Below are positions 2,112 through 23,296 of a stretch of 64,000 nucleotides of DNA, in pieces. The stretch's first letter is position 1. Each line of letters opens with the position of its first letter. This stretch comes from Bispira polyomma (taxonomy: Eukaryota): contig OZ287750.1 of assembly GCA_965649765.1 (NCBI GenBank), positions 13,764,001 through 13,828,000 on the forward strand, written 5' to 3'. Below the pieces are notes generated by a model. It was not told the DNA's origin and made no database searches. It worked only from the letters and a program-made list of their open reading frames with translations. Made by a program: the position numbers and the translations under genes.

Positions 2112-2715
2112 TCAAGTGGTCCGGTGGTTGGTTTGATCTGATGCAGAGCCTACAGAATATGCCAGTCCACTATCTGCACTGCGAGCCCGGTTTCTGTCGG
2201 GGAAGTTTGGCAGTTCGTAGATATGATCCCTTGGCTGCTGTTGGTTGCCTGGGTGACCTGCTGGCGGTGCTGTGCTGTGCTGCTGGTTATTACCGCTGCC
2301 ACTGGGTACCGCATCTTCACCTATGTTGTGGCCCCTGGTGGCTGTGGTCGTGTAGGGTCTACCAGATGCTGGATTCCCTCCCCCCACTCCCCTTCCACCT
2401 GAAGGAGGCAGTACAGCCCCATCCAAGCTGATGTCATCCTGTAAGATGAGACTGTTGCAGTCTGCTTGTTGCAGCTGATGTCCAGGAGGGAGGTTCACCA
2501 CCTCCACAATGTGGGGCAGGGGTCTGTTTTGTGGGTGTAAGGTGCTGGTGTAATCGTGCATGGGCCTGTAGATGAGGGTACCGTCTGGGCCAGCTTCTGT
2601 GTTCTGATTGGTTGGGTAGAGACCAAACATGGTACCCGTCTTAGACAGGTAGTCTCGGTACTGAGAGTTGTCATTGATTAGGTACGTAGACTTGGACATT
2701 TGGCTCCTGCTTTTT
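2112..2715 (-). CDS. coding exon 7 (terminal): low-complexity cytoplasmic tail with Tyr motifs
   Basis: Acceptor ctattttcttacag. AG+A gives Arg, then KSRSQMSK... to TGA at 2114-2112. GC-rich relative to the flanks. Confidence 0.88.
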
Positions 2716-20700: not shown

Positions 20701-23296
20701 GCAAGAAATATAAACACCCACAGCATAAGGAGTTAGTATAAAAGAGAACCAGAAAGACATAGTCCTTTGTTTTTTGTGCCACTTCGTGGGAATTTTAACC
20801 AGAGGTCAAGTTTAGTTAGCCTGCTATCTACAATATGTCAATATGAGTAAATCAGGAATCGCACAGCTGAAAACCTGTGATAACAAATAGGATATTTTTA
20901 GAATTACGAGGAAACAAAACTTGTGTAGAACCTCGTTCTAAGTTTTTTAAGCAGGCGTAATTTTACTTGGTCAGTTCCATTTTCTTATCTCACCATATAA
21001 CTGAAATATTGAATGGTCTTAATTTATAGCTATCAAAAATATATACATTTCTACAATAGGTTTGGCTTCTTGATAGTAATGGTTACATTGAATATTTGAA
21101 GTAAATACAAATGGTAGTCTTAGAGCCAGTTTCTCCACTTCCTGCCTAGTTTTCCTCTATGCCTCTCTACTTTCCCAAGCTTGACTCTCTATTCCTTCCC
21201 ATCACACAGAATAATCACTGTTAAATGGCTCACTTGTTTATTATTTCTAGGAAGAAGGAAAAAAATACCGAGTTGTCGGTAGTAGTATATCAAGTTGTTC
21301 AGTTAATCTATTGTTTTGATTATTGCATGTAAAAGCTTGTAATTTTTCTCTGATGGAGGTATGATGCATCCATCAATTACATCCGGGGCCATGAGATAGC
21401 ACAGGAAAAGGGGAAACCAAAAGGCATATAACAAGGACTGACTTTACAAAAAGAATTTTTTATAAATCAGTAAAAATATGGCTGATCATTACACGACAAT
21501 CCACTTTCCTAATTATAATTTTCAATCATTAAAAGGGATCTAGTTTGTTGAAGAAATACTCTAACAAATCATAAATTTGGGTCACAATTGTCAATGGTTG
21601 TATTTATCAGTCTATTTTTAATATAGAAGATCTTTCATCGTGAATATTGTTTTGTGTGTGTGTAAAATGGTTGTTTGAAAGTGCTAATAATGTGGAAATA
21701 AGCAAATAGTCTTGTAGGAAATTAACAAAGTGCTAGCACAACGTAGATATAAACCATTAATCTCCTCAAGAAATTAACAGGAACATTTTTTTTAGGAGAC
21801 ATAAAGATAAATATGAACCACACACATATAGCAGGCGCACATCCACTGTGGCCTAGTGGGTAAAACGCTTGTTTAGAAAGGCAGAACACTTGAGTTTGAT
21901 ACCATTCTAATGCGACCAGGTACACTATGTATGGCCAGATGAACTGAAATGAACTAGTACATTTGTTACAGCGCACTTATAGAACACAGGGTCCTTTCAA
22001 ATGCGCTTCCTCATGGGCAGCCACTATGGGTGCCGAGGATGAACATTTATCAACGTCCCCAAGGATCTTTAATCTACCACTGAAGTGATTACTCAGCGAC
22101 CGAGGACCGCCATTTTAAGTGGTCATCTGAGCCACTAGGCAACTTGTGTTCACATCTTGCCTAAGAATGTTATCCCACCAAATGAAACTAGCGGCCGGTA
22201 CCGGGACTTGAACCGGGGACCTTCTGATCATCAGACCAACACCCTAACCACAAGATCACAGGGGATCACGGATACATAGTGGCTCTGATGTCCACTTTAA
22301 ACGATGGTGTCATCTGTTATTGGGTCCTATCCCCAGTGGGGCCGTAATGGCCTAGTGGTTAGCAAGCAGTGCGCTTCACAATCACTGGTCTCTCACCTCT
22401 GGGCGGTGTGAGATCGACTCCCGTCGATGCCTATGTGGGAAAGGTGGTAGTTCCTTACTGTGGGCCGCTGGTTTCAGTGTAGAACCTTGACGAACTGTAT
22501 ACAGTGTTTCCTCCAGTGTTCCAACTACCCATCCCAATATAACCTACTAAAAGGTGCTAGAGTGGACGTTAAATATCCAAATTCAAATTCAAAAGATTAA
22601 AGCAGGGTCCTCTTTCTTGTTCTGTAATCTAAAAACCGTTGCATGTTCTTATGCAATCTTGTTATGCTTGATAAACATAAAGAGTTAAAGAATGCTCACC
22701 ACACATGAACCTCTGAAAGATGTTGTAAGAGCAAGACTTAAACATCTAAATTCAAATCAAATTCAAATTCAAACCTATCCTCAGTGTGAGGCTAAATAGC
22801 CTTGGGGACATTGATATATGGTGTCATCCTCAAGCCGCCTATCTCTTCAGTTAAGAGTATGACAGTTACTGGTGTGTGTTGGCTGTAGCACTTGGGCAGT
22901 CAAGAAATGAGTCAATTAGCCGTTGAATACCAGATAAGGGTAGATAAATGCTACAAAAAAGGTATAAATTTGAATATCTTGCCACTCGTACAAAACAAAC
23001 AAAAAAGTCCTATAAGAAATTTTAATTTATCTCTACTTCTCTTTACATCTTACTACATCTGAGTAAGTTTATCAGTTAAACTAACTCTTGAGTAACTCTG
23101 CCAATAAACCCCCCCCCCCCCACACACACACACACACTCCACACTCCTTTATACCCCCTTCCACAAAATAATTGTTACCATAACAAGAGATCCATTTACC
23201 TGCTTTGATCCTCCACATTACTCCAACATGGATAAACAGACTCAATAAAAACACATAATGTTCCTTCTTGGTGTGAACTAATCTCCTCAGCTCCAT
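2112..23296 (-). CDS. 7-coding-exon gene for a 555-aa type I membrane protein (signal peptide - SUEL/Gal-lectin-like - CUB-like - CCP/sushi-like - TM - Tyr-motif cytoplasmic tail)
   Basis: Exons of 97+297+372+153+57+88+604 = 1668 nt. All introns are GT..AG with compatible phases (1,1,1,1,1,2) and there is no internal stop. Domain calls come from Cys/aromatic patterns recognised by eye. Confidence 0.85.
3425..3562. mobile_element. small MITE
   Basis: Imperfect TIRs gctggcattcacaaagattcttag / ctaagaaactttgtcaataccagc. Confidence 0.55.
3616..3703 (-). CDS. coding exon 6: transmembrane helix (GLLFVIGLGVALGIVIGFVLLCVVAMYMKR)
   Basis: Acceptor tttccttgtatttaaag, donor AAA AG|gtaagc (phase 2). A hydrophobic stretch of ~25 aa is followed by basic stop-transfer residues. 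Confidence 0.88.
3770..4040. repeat. degenerate GC-rich minisatellite (ggtgggcagtttacctgg / gcagaatttgggt units)
   Basis: About 10 diverged short units, just intronic of the TM-exon acceptor. Confidence 0.6.
4278..4334 (-). CDS. coding exon 5: 57-nt Ser/Thr-rich stalk (GTNVNTAKNTGEASQSSSL)
   Basis: Acceptor ttttccag, donor TTA G|gtatgt. Open in the required frame, phase 1-1. Too short to appear in the ORF track. Confidence 0.75.
   Translation of the reverse strand, partial: VQMLILLKTLVKLPSLHP
4525..4710 (-). mobile_element. degenerate SINE (related to the copy at 44766-44970)
   Basis: Reverse complement shares gcactggtttcttcc / cgtgatacgacctaagctgttaaaaa and the tail with 44899-44970. Confidence 0.5.
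5011..5267. mobile_element. PIF/Harbinger-like MITE
   Basis: TIRs ccgttcacacta / tagtgtgaacg, with TAA flanking both ends. Confidence 0.55.
5390..5503 (+). mobile_element. SINE fragment (shared core)
   Basis: ggctcagatggccacttaaaatggcggccctctgtcaatgggtcctatc matches the core of the copies at 22280, 36030 and 54614. Confidence 0.6.
5610..5910 (+). mobile_element. probable HINE-like repeat
   Basis: gcagccattttggatttt motif, an acggacgga-like microsatellite and a weak 3' hairpin. Confidence 0.35.
6005..6157 (-). CDS. coding exon 4: short 4-Cys CCP/sushi-like module
   Basis: Acceptor ctttttcag, donor CCA G|gtactg. AIGCKNIDIPQYA..VNC..WHLTCDGTAWIGEIGVC shows the C..C..C-x4-W..C pattern. Confidence 0.85.
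6562..6725. mobile_element. short MITE remnant (same family as the host at 12453-13184)
   Basis: gtgaaccctttt..aaggggtttcactgta inverted ends. Homologous to 12453-12608 plus 13171-13184. Confidence 0.5.
7021..9027. mobile_element. 2-kb foldback/long-TIR non-autonomous DNA element
   Basis: The arm at 7021-~7606 is the reverse complement of ~8428-9027 with high identity by eye. Ends are TAgaagcg..cgcttcTA (possible TA TSD). No transposase ORF. Confidence 0.85.
9030..9246 (-). mobile_element. 5'-truncated tRNA-SINE family A
   Basis: Near-identical to 21945-22155. Confidence 0.75.
9985..10430. repeat. ~100-130-bp tandem repeat derived from the CUB exon 3' end plus donor site (3 extra copies)
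   Basis: accttcatatctgat..tactctgggcatacatctg..gagggcaagttt recurs near 10026, 10148 (deleted copy) and 10243, and in the exon itself at 10370. Confidence 0.85.
10372..10743 (-). CDS. coding exon 3: CUB-like domain
   Basis: Acceptor ttttttgaacccag, donor GAA G|gtataa. SGYIAS..CPWTIQVPEGQKINLTLYDF..GYMIRYE is a CUB signature. Confidence 0.9.
11674..11970 (-). CDS. coding exon 2: SUEL/rhamnose-binding-lectin-like domain
   Basis: Acceptor ...ttgccaactag, donor CCA G|gtaaac. Sequence FCMDENYKATC..VILMRAAKAGRLWLGKC..IGCSKDV..RCSGFNMC..CPNDLKLFLVAEYDCI has the 8-Cys SUEL-type spacing. Confidence 0.88.
12609..13166. mobile_element. TTAA-TSD MITE (Kolobok-like) nested in a smaller MITE
   Basis: ttaa|ggttgttcgctaccattttt .. 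aaaaatggtaccgaacaacc|ttaa. Confidence 0.8.
19752..20020 (+). mobile_element. HINE/Helentron-like non-autonomous element
   Basis: Sub-terminal IR tacctccaccaag / cttggcggaggta, an (acaa)n microsatellite and a 3' hairpin. A reverse end fragment lies at 40971-41030. Confidence 0.7.
21941..22269 (-). mobile_element. full-length tRNA-SINE family A
   Basis: Minus strand has an A-box-like gtgatcttgtgg, a B box ggttcaagtcc, the shared core, and a gcgctgtaacaaat + (cattt)-like tail. Confidence 0.85.
22338..22773 (+). mobile_element. tRNA-SINE family C plus 3' extension, bounded by a 12-bp TSD
   Basis: A box tggcctagtgg, B-like gatcgactcc, (aaattc)n tails near 22580 and 22750. TSD cctatcc[c/t]cagt at 22326-22337 and 22774-22785. 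Confidence 0.85.
23200..23296 (-). CDS. coding exon 1: signal peptide (MELRRLVHTKKEHYVFLLSLFIHVGVMWRIKA)
   Basis: ATG at 23296 (ataATGG), then a basic N-region and hydrophobic core. Ends GCA G|gtaaat (phase 1), which joins the AT of the next exon to give Asp. Upstream acceptor cttctttcaccattag has its AG at 23350-23349. Confidence 0.7.

Follow-up and report, generated by a model that had tools for sequence, protein, structure and literature searches.

A single-pass SUEL-CUB-CCP receptor gene of Bispira polyomma and its place in a large annelid receptor family

We describe a seven-exon gene on the minus strand of a stretch of the Bispira polyomma genome (assembly GCA_965649765.1, contig OZ287750.1, positions 13,764,001-13,828,000). 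This stretch of 64,000 nucleotides (nt) is called the window below, and positions are counted from its first letter. The gene adds a new, divergent member to an annelid receptor family that has been catalogued but whose function is uncharacterised. The locus is probably a real and intact gene for a type I single-pass receptor of this family, a dispersed and divergent member with orthologues of its own, whose product would bind protein and signal through tyrosines, and we hold this explanation with fair confidence.

This assignment follows from the order of the encoded parts. Colinear SUEL-like, CUB-like and CCP modules, a transmembrane helix and a tyrosine-bearing tail, with significant similarity in each ectodomain module, were taken to define the family, and all of them were found in the window gene. 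The same architecture had been proposed in an earlier note on this DNA, and it agrees with the Pfam CUB match, the predicted folds and the colinear relatives. In tblastn searches against the window, six full-length annelid relatives matched exons 2, 3, 4 and 5 in that order. For exon 6, orthologous tails were found in three other assemblies. Together, the colinear matches and the three tails show that the model of exons 2 to 6 exceeds chance.

Gene model and support for its exons

The window lies on contig C3 (13.764-13.828 Mb) of the 1.035-Gb genome. Its DNA is AT-rich and of animal type, with a GC content of 0.29-0.42 and one gap of 164 N at 52008-52171. In the list of open reading frames (ORFs) the gene is visible merely as minus-strand fragments, and reading the three minus-strand frames gave the seven exons. 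Exon 1 (23296-23200) begins with an ATG at 23296-23294 and encodes a signal-peptide-like sequence with a basic N-terminal end and a 15-residue hydrophobic core; it ends in phase 1 at the donor CAG/GTAAAT. Exon 2 (11970-11674) encodes the SUEL-like domain, which has the fold of rhamnose-binding lectins (RBLs) and eight Cys residues. It is followed by the CUB exon 3 (10743-10372), for which an alternative upstream acceptor would place the start at 10776, and by exon 4 (6157-6005), a short CCP/sushi-like module of about 48 residues with four Cys and an invariant Trp. A candidate Ser/Thr/Asn-rich stalk exon of 57 nt (4334-4278) is bounded by the acceptor TTTTCCAG and the donor TTAG/GTATGT. Exons 2, 3 and 4 and the stalk exon are all of phase 1-1. 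Exon 5 (3703-3616), which encodes the transmembrane helix, is of phase 1-2, and exon 6 (2715-2112) comprises a 200-residue cytoplasmic tail and the TGA stop at 2114-2112.

All six introns have GT..AG borders, and their phases (1, 1, 1, 1, 1 and 2) are mutually compatible. The first intron spans 11.2 kb. The exon lengths of 97, 297, 372, 153, 57, 88 and 604 nt add up to 1668 nt, that is 555 codons and a stop, where the count of 555 residues is an arithmetic sum over exons that were analysed one by one. The earlier note had claimed a complete in-frame model of 555 amino acids, and the seven minus-strand exons give exactly this number. The 57-nt exon is needed for it, because 555 residues are reached only with this exon. 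Without it the protein would have 536 residues, and the upstream acceptor of exon 3 combined with the absence of a stalk exon would give 547.

The relative P0104 illustrates the colinear support. In tblastn it aligned with the SUEL exon at 11953-11675 (E 1.3e-18), the CUB exon at 10747-10364 (E 4.1e-14), the CCP exon at 6206-6009 (E 2.6e-12) and the transmembrane exon at 3707-3615 (E 1.0e-6). When 12 full-length relatives were compared by local BLASTP (E<=0.01), the SUEL and CUB exons were each matched by all 12, the CCP exon by 11 and the transmembrane exon by four. Four relatives (P0104, P0096, P0117 and P0076) are each complete on contigs of 1.9-2.3 kb, which suggests that these contigs are spliced transcripts in other species. 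The alignments of the relatives start at 10747/10744 and run straight over the boundary between exons 2 and 3 that results from the acceptor at 10743. This acceptor was preferred for that reason, and the upstream one (exon start at 10776) was set aside.

Four signal-like candidates were seen in 11971-26000, and exon 1 is the best of them, with a donor match of 8/9 and a hydrophobic maximum of 2.32. Both splice sites of the 57-nt exon are strong. Of 113 enumerated candidates, 15 open ones of phase 1/1 remained after a pyrimidine-tract filter, this exon among them. A stalk exon similar to the 'E-x-A-G' spacer of the relatives was not found in 3704-6004, and the 57-nt exon resembles no relative's spacer.

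It could be supposed that no 555-residue protein is made, the locus being a family copy that is silent or decaying and its exons relics, or the model being mis-assembled. Three sequencing runs of one study (X1-X3), none of them labelled as RNA, were compared with positions 900-6300 of the window, and none of the seven listed joints fell at a predicted splice site. The contigs of these runs continue unbroken over exon-intron borders, for example in the records covering 1412-3479 and 3487-4614. Because they are colinear through the introns and their joints lie off the predicted splice sites, X1-X3 are taken to be genomic DNA. The run contigs do not cover 5968-6300, which contains the CCP exon, and such a gap proves nothing. 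The idea of a relic would also fit the long first intron, the lack of support for the first and stalk exons, the duplication of the exon 3 end and its donor in intron 3, and a SUEL domain that is the most divergent among those compared. Against it, each exon has an open frame between canonical splice sites, and every family-invariant Cys, Gly and Trp is kept. Furthermore, the tail and SUEL exons are 45-72% identical in other assemblies, with invariant blocks up to the last residue; since these exons are so conserved, a pseudogene would be unexpected. We consider a relic or an assembly artefact very unlikely.

Several repeats were observed within the introns. A four-copy tandem repeat on the minus strand (10013-10430; period 101-127 nt, 69-89% identity) spans the end of exon 3 and part of intron 3. 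Its first copy, in gene orientation, is formed by the last ~58 nt of exon 3 together with the donor, so that three degenerate decoy copies of the exon end and the 5' splice site stand within the intron. This repeat was missed by Tandem Repeats Finder. In all three DNA runs, the summed contig depth exceeded 1000 at 3434-3614, 4520-4700 and 5787-5967, against ~11-70 alongside, which indicates interspersed repeats inside introns 4-6. Short tandem repeats with periods of 16, 17 and 46 nt were found at 3749-3955, in the intron directly upstream of the transmembrane exon.

The extracellular modules and their candidate ligand

The head encoded by exon 2 has the fold of an RBL domain. PMC10817417 and PMC3269628 define RBL domains by eight Cys together with the motifs YGR and DPC/KYL. 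An AlphaFold2 model of exon 2, built from a 67-row alignment, reached a predicted local distance difference test score (pLDDT) of 87.8 and shows the alpha/beta fold of ~95-100 residues with eight conserved Cys that is characteristic of this group. The eight Cys and Gly33, invariant in the 67-row alignment, are all kept. At E<=0.001, all 12 Foldseek matches of the model were RBL or latrophilin lectin domains (LAT-1, ADGRL3, latrophilin 1-3 and SUL-I; TMq 0.75-0.80). The best of them were 8suf, 8djg, 6ska, 6ske and 6vhh (E 1.7e-5 to 1.5e-4, TMq 0.76-0.80), and secreted RBLs were matched by 5h4s (E 2.3e-4) and, more weakly, by 2zx0 (CSL3, E 2.6e-3). A phmmer search of the PDB sequences likewise gave the lectin domain of Caenorhabditis elegans LAT-1 (8suf_E, E 0.0067) as the best match.

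The motifs of the sugar site are altered. In place of YGR and DPC-x-GT-x-KYL, exon 2 has A-G-R, Q-C-P-N-D and K-L-F-L. The A-G-R sequence and the C-terminal loop QCPNDLKLFL had both been reported in the earlier note and are present. In PMC3269628, the primary sugar contacts of RBL domains are Glu, the Tyr of YGR, Gly and Lys, listed in its section 9 as Glu7, Tyr27, Gly83 and Lys86 for CSL3 and as Glu42, Tyr63, Gly117 and Lys120 for latrophilin-1. Judged against these motifs, the earlier claim of degraded sugar-binding motifs is supported: the Tyr is replaced, the Gly of the G-T turn stands opposite Asn84 in the HMMER alignment to latrophilin-1, and the DPC and KYL sequences are changed. Lys120 of latrophilin-1 possibly corresponds to Lys87, although this alignment is ambiguous. 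Among 179 related domains, the position of the YGR Tyr is occupied by Tyr in 150, Phe in 27, Met in one and Asn in one, so that 177 of 179 have Tyr or Phe and none has Ala. Compared with the family consensus, exon 2 further shows Tyr45->Arg, Arg65->Phe, Pro81->Gln, Tyr89->Phe and Glu91->Val.

The orthologous SUEL exon P0168 has Val at the same position (VGR) and keeps the F-L-V-A change. Because this orthologue is also without the Tyr and shares Arg45, Phe89 and Val91 with exon 2, the sequences argue that the loss of the Tyr is a stable derived trait of the orthogroup and not decay. Judged from these residues, sugar binding by the head appears unlikely. The head would more likely bind protein than glycan, because the sugar-contact Tyr is lost and the nearest folds belong to lectin domains of latrophilins in complex with teneurin or TOL-1.

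It is also conceivable that the protein is a glycan-recognition receptor of the membrane, a true lectin that binds sugars of the rhamnose or galactose type on cells or microbes, and that the family is an innate pattern-recognition repertoire. The RBL fold with its eight Cys is present, Glu12 of the sugar site, found in 91% of relatives, is kept, and a Lys lies close to Lys120 of latrophilin-1 in the alignment. The expansion in tandem arrays, which hold 75 of the 80 copies on one contig (see below), is typical of immune recognition families, and lipopolysaccharide and Gb3 are among the ligands of RBLs (PMC3269628). Set against this are the replacement of the sugar-contact Tyr by Ala here and by Val in the orthologue, the Asn opposite the G-T Gly and the altered DPC and KYL motifs. 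In addition, the best structural neighbours were solved with protein partners, the window gene stands outside the arrays, and its tail is conserved and not fast-changing. We therefore regard a glycan receptor as unlikely.

The gene might instead serve as a neuronal or developmental adhesion-guidance co-receptor in the manner of EVA-1 or the latrophilin lectin domain, binding a teneurin-, Slit- or Toll-like partner in trans. The nearest solved structures are the complexes of the LAT-1 lectin domain with TOL-1 and of the latrophilin lectin domain with teneurin-2, and a single-copy, dispersed, orthologue-conserved gene with a strongly conserved tail would suit such a role. However, similarity of fold shows no shared ligand, and neither architecture was found. 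Latrophilins are adhesion G-protein-coupled receptors with lectin, olfactomedin, hormone-receptor, GAIN and seven-transmembrane parts. The window gene has the same eight-Cys alpha/beta fold and its best sequence and fold matches among the protein-bound latrophilin lectin domains of the PDB, but it has a single hydrophobic helix exon, and CUB and CCP modules stand behind the lectin fold. EVA-1/EVA1C is a single-pass protein with two SUEL domains, no CUB or CCP domain and a proposed protein ligand. It resembles the window gene in being a single-pass membrane protein with a SUEL-type ectodomain, but the latter has only one SUEL-like exon, with CUB and CCP behind it, and no sequence-specific match was seen. 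We consider a guidance co-receptor of this type quite unlikely. The head also differs from that of latrophilin-1, which keeps the Tyr and Gly-Thr sugar contacts (PMC3269628). The secreted RBLs (SUEL, CSL3 and SUL-I) share the fold and eight Cys of exon 2, but the window protein is membrane-anchored, has a single lectin domain fused to CUB and CCP, and has altered YGR, DPC and KYL motifs.

Exon 3 is a CUB domain by its Pfam match (PF00431, 34.5 bits against a cut-off of 21.4). Its PDB matches were the CUB domain of PCPE-1 (E 1.4e-7) and those of cubilin, MASP-1, MASP-3 and NETO2; these matches imply no orthology. The exon also carries two N-x-S/T sequons, a marker of an ectodomain. An acidic triad forms the Ca2+ site of ligand-binding CUB domains. 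In the alignment to PCPE-1, the Glu of 'L-E' is replaced by Thr and the Asp of 'Y-D' by Gly, while the third position is unaligned. Thus, unlike ligand-binding CUB domains, this one seems, from the alignment, to be without two of the acidic residues.

Exon 4 can be assigned, with moderate confidence and on the strength of its model, to a short CCP-like module. A Gly, four Cys, Trp42 and Gly44, spaced as in classical CCP modules, do not vary among 26 paralogous CCP exons, and all of them are kept in exon 4. The AlphaFold2 model of the exon had a pLDDT of 91.5. In VIA-align its top 50 entries were all CCP modules (Z 4.6-5.9, below 8; root-mean-square deviation 2.0-2.8 A over 48-50 of 50 residues). 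In Foldseek the top rows were CCP proteins as well, yet at E 0.8 or weaker. The order of a CUB followed by a CCP is that of C1s and the MASP proteins (4lot was among the VIA-align entries). Together, the three small disulfide-rich modules would bind the extracellular ligand.

The transmembrane helix and the cytoplasmic tail

Exon 5 encodes an uncharged hydrophobic stretch of 27 residues with a G-x3-G-x3-G run, followed by K-R-K-S-R. Over 28-31 residues it is 61% identical to P0104, and its identity to P0136 and P0096 is 50% and 57%. When the C-terminal part of P0104 was searched against the B. polyomma genome, the best match was the transmembrane exon of the window, although a weak one (E 0.0028). 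The G-x3-G-x3-G helix was found in four of 12 relatives (P0104, P0136, P0096 and P0152), and it might favour association between helices.

No paralogue of exon 6 was found in a search of the own genome. The orthologous tails in the three other assemblies are 67, 60 and 45% identical (E 4e-73 to 8e-37), which shows that exon 6 is conserved coding sequence. In the tail alignment, 76 of 200 columns are invariant, including six of nine Tyr. Next to the membrane there is a long conserved stretch with Tyr blocks, and the middle varies. The C-terminal block, which holds H-I-Y-E-L-P and D-S-G-L-A-x-S, stays unchanged up to the very end, its last eight residues being fixed. A motif of the form H-x-[YW]-E-x-P occurs in the tails of seven of 12 relatives, against a rough chance expectation of 2.5e-4 per protein. 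As a whole, the tail of the window gene aligned with none of the 12 tails of the full-length relatives by BLAST at E<=0.01, and a search of the ESM Atlas with it gave no usable match.

H-I-Y-E-L-P would be a docking site of the Y-x-x-P type for SH2 domains. Phosphotyrosine docking is suggested because the tail Tyr are invariant and H-x-[YW]-E-x-P occurs family-wide, and the signal could be relayed through the Tyr of Q-Y-R-D-Y, I-Y-R-P-x-H-D-Y and H-I-Y-E-L-P. The Y-x-x-hydrophobic sequence in I-Y-R-P-[MV] may be an AP-2 sorting motif, and D-S-G-L-A-x-S is degron-like; these two motifs may control uptake and turnover of the receptor. The roles of G-x3-G-x3-G and R-x-R-x-x-S are likewise read from consensus patterns. 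In the DCBLD family of CUB-containing single-pass receptors, the tails also carry Y-x-x-P sites.

The annelid receptor family, orthologues and other features of the window

The window gene belongs to a large family in its own genome. Further matches to the SUEL exon numbered at least 117 (E<=0.01), those to the CUB exon at least 79 (E<=0.001) and those to the CCP exon at least 38 (E<=0.01). For 74 of the 117 SUEL exons, a CUB exon of the same strand follows downstream within 6 kb (median 1.0 kb). Conversely, 74 of the 79 CUB exons and 33 of the 38 CCP exons stand behind a SUEL exon. On contig C4, five tandem arrays of SUEL-CUB-CCP exons (13.89-14.00, 26.96-26.99, 36.86-36.95, 88.22-88.34 and 99.26-99.43 Mb) hold 11, 5, 18, 18 and 23 copies, that is 75 of the 80 copies on this contig, and a further array lies on contig C8 (45.68-45.80 Mb). 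The arrays on both contigs comprise 3-23 receptor genes each, spaced ~5-7 kb apart. One array member, L026, has SUEL, CUB, CCP, transmembrane and tail exons within 3.6 kb and a tail type of its own with different Tyr motifs. The earlier note had presented the window gene as the best candidate system; the gene does not stand alone, but is a divergent member among ~100 or more family genes.

The family extends to other annelids. A protein search with the SUEL exon gave 1695 representative proteins at E<=1e-3, of which 569 reached E<=1e-10; identity was never above 52%. Eight of 20 looked-up matches carried species names, all annelid (Capitella teleta, Helobdella robusta and Lamellibrachia satsuma), and the search with P0104 added Paralvinella palmiformis and the nr entry 'Gal-binding and CUB domains containing receptor 15 [Arenicola marina]' (P0154). 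The lophotrochozoan range expected in the earlier note is thus in agreement with ten of ten named relatives being annelids, and no characterised orthologue was found, in line with its description of the receptor as uncharacterised. On the other hand, the family is not confined to 'uncharacterized' predictions, as that note had it, since the descriptive name from Arenicola marina already exists in nr. In a literature search, neither a SUEL-CUB-CCP receptor family nor the nr name of P0154 turned up, nor did a published function for any of the annelid predictions, and papers or supplements may still describe the Arenicola receptors.

Annelid predictions named 'Gal-binding and CUB domains containing receptor' or 'SUEL-type lectin domain-containing protein' show the same order of SUEL-like, CUB-like, short CCP, transmembrane and tail parts. 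Examples are receptor 15 of Arenicola marina, ELU10382.1 of Capitella teleta (P0136), the Paralvinella palmiformis protein (P0152) and KAI0217867.1 of Lamellibrachia satsuma (P0066). Their identity to the window exons is 31-44% in SUEL, 25-47% in CUB and 26-47% in CCP. They share the tail motif H-x-Y-E-x-P (7/12) and, in a subset, the G-x3-G-x3-G helix (4/12). Unlike them, the window gene has lost the aromatic residue of YGR, and its tail is not alignable by BLAST. Three predictions contain several SUEL-like domains per protein: 11 in P0001 (Helobdella robusta, 1188 residues), and four and two in P0002 and P0003 (Capitella teleta). In P0003, two SUEL-CUB-CCP units seem to be fused and to be followed by a further region and a transmembrane helix. 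These forms are either gene-model fusions of array neighbours or a genuine multi-head form.

Within its own genome the window gene is a dispersed copy on C3, outside the arrays. Its best paralogues are 41-45% identical in SUEL, 38% in CUB and 50% in CCP. Orthology to the full-length relatives was rejected, as P0104 prefers array copies (up to 57% identity). The orthologue P0168 is a fragment of 74 residues that is 72% identical to the SUEL exon. Its longest contig has a length of 323,047, the same as recorded for the tail match P0165; this is consistent with the P0165 tail and the P0168 SUEL exon lying in one locus, and is not proof of it. The window gene has true orthologues in other assemblies and is probably not a recent copy from the tandem arrays.

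A number of results weigh against the explanation of the locus as an intact, protein-binding and tyrosine-signalling receptor. Besides the retained Glu12, possibly with the Lys, and the runs without a joint at a predicted splice site, the first exon and the 57-nt exon are without homology support; both rest on splice sites, the 57-nt exon also on an open frame. The SUEL exon stayed below the Pfam cut-off (SUEL_Lectin, PF02140; 24.8 bits against 31.4, E 2.8e-5), which nine of ten relatives scanned with Pfam passed. None of these ten had a Pfam CUB or Sushi match at E<=0.01. Exon 4 gave no match to Pfam Sushi (PF00084) at E<=1, only one of the 26 paralogous CCP exons matched Sushi (E 0.011), and a profile of the 26 exons found no CCP chain in the PDB, its 31 weak matches being all unrelated and mainly antibody chains (best E 0.034). 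Since these searches gave nothing usable, the CCP proposed in the earlier note rests on the Cys/Trp pattern and the predicted fold of exon 4. No reciprocal best match to the full-length relatives was obtained, the SUEL exon of the window being 46th of 85 own-genome matches to P0104. Finally, D-S-G-L-A-x-S is one residue longer than the classical D-S-G-x-x-S, and the SH2, AP-2 and degron readings of the tail follow consensus patterns.

To our knowledge, the only well-defined receptors for cell-surface recognition in annelids are Toll-like receptors and lectins. The present family of ~100 or more genes joins three classical ligand-binding modules to tyrosine tails, and the family and its scale are more striking than the single gene, whose value is that of a conserved and testable representative. 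The gene is a tractable entry, as it is single-copy with clear orthologues, has a conserved tail with testable motifs and has lost a defined sugar contact. Its ligand and tail signalling would give the first functional handle on the whole family. Should it be an ordinary adhesion molecule, this would still be a useful annotation and no surprise.

A more far-reaching possibility is that the gene is a slow-evolving 'founder-type' member of an annelid-specific superfamily of more than 100 genes per genome, with a head that turned from a sugar binder into a protein binder and an invariant tail whose three Tyr blocks, degron-like motif and fixed end couple it to a tyrosine-kinase and ubiquitin-controlled pathway, the arrays being fast-diversifying recognition offshoots. 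We offer this as a speculation that is on balance rather doubtful. If true, it would mean an undescribed immune- or self-recognition receptor system of lophotrochozoans with one conserved core receptor.

Apart from the receptor gene, the ORF list of the window shows long ORFs of short tandem peptide repeats at 28407-29208 (plus strand) and 44058-44761 (minus strand), which resemble minisatellite-like DNA. Judged from the translation alone, an ORF at 34976-35500 (minus strand) resembles the C-terminal part of a non-LTR retrotransposon protein, as does one at 2692-3498 (plus strand) of L026. One of these retrotransposon-like ORFs lies directly upstream of an array receptor gene.

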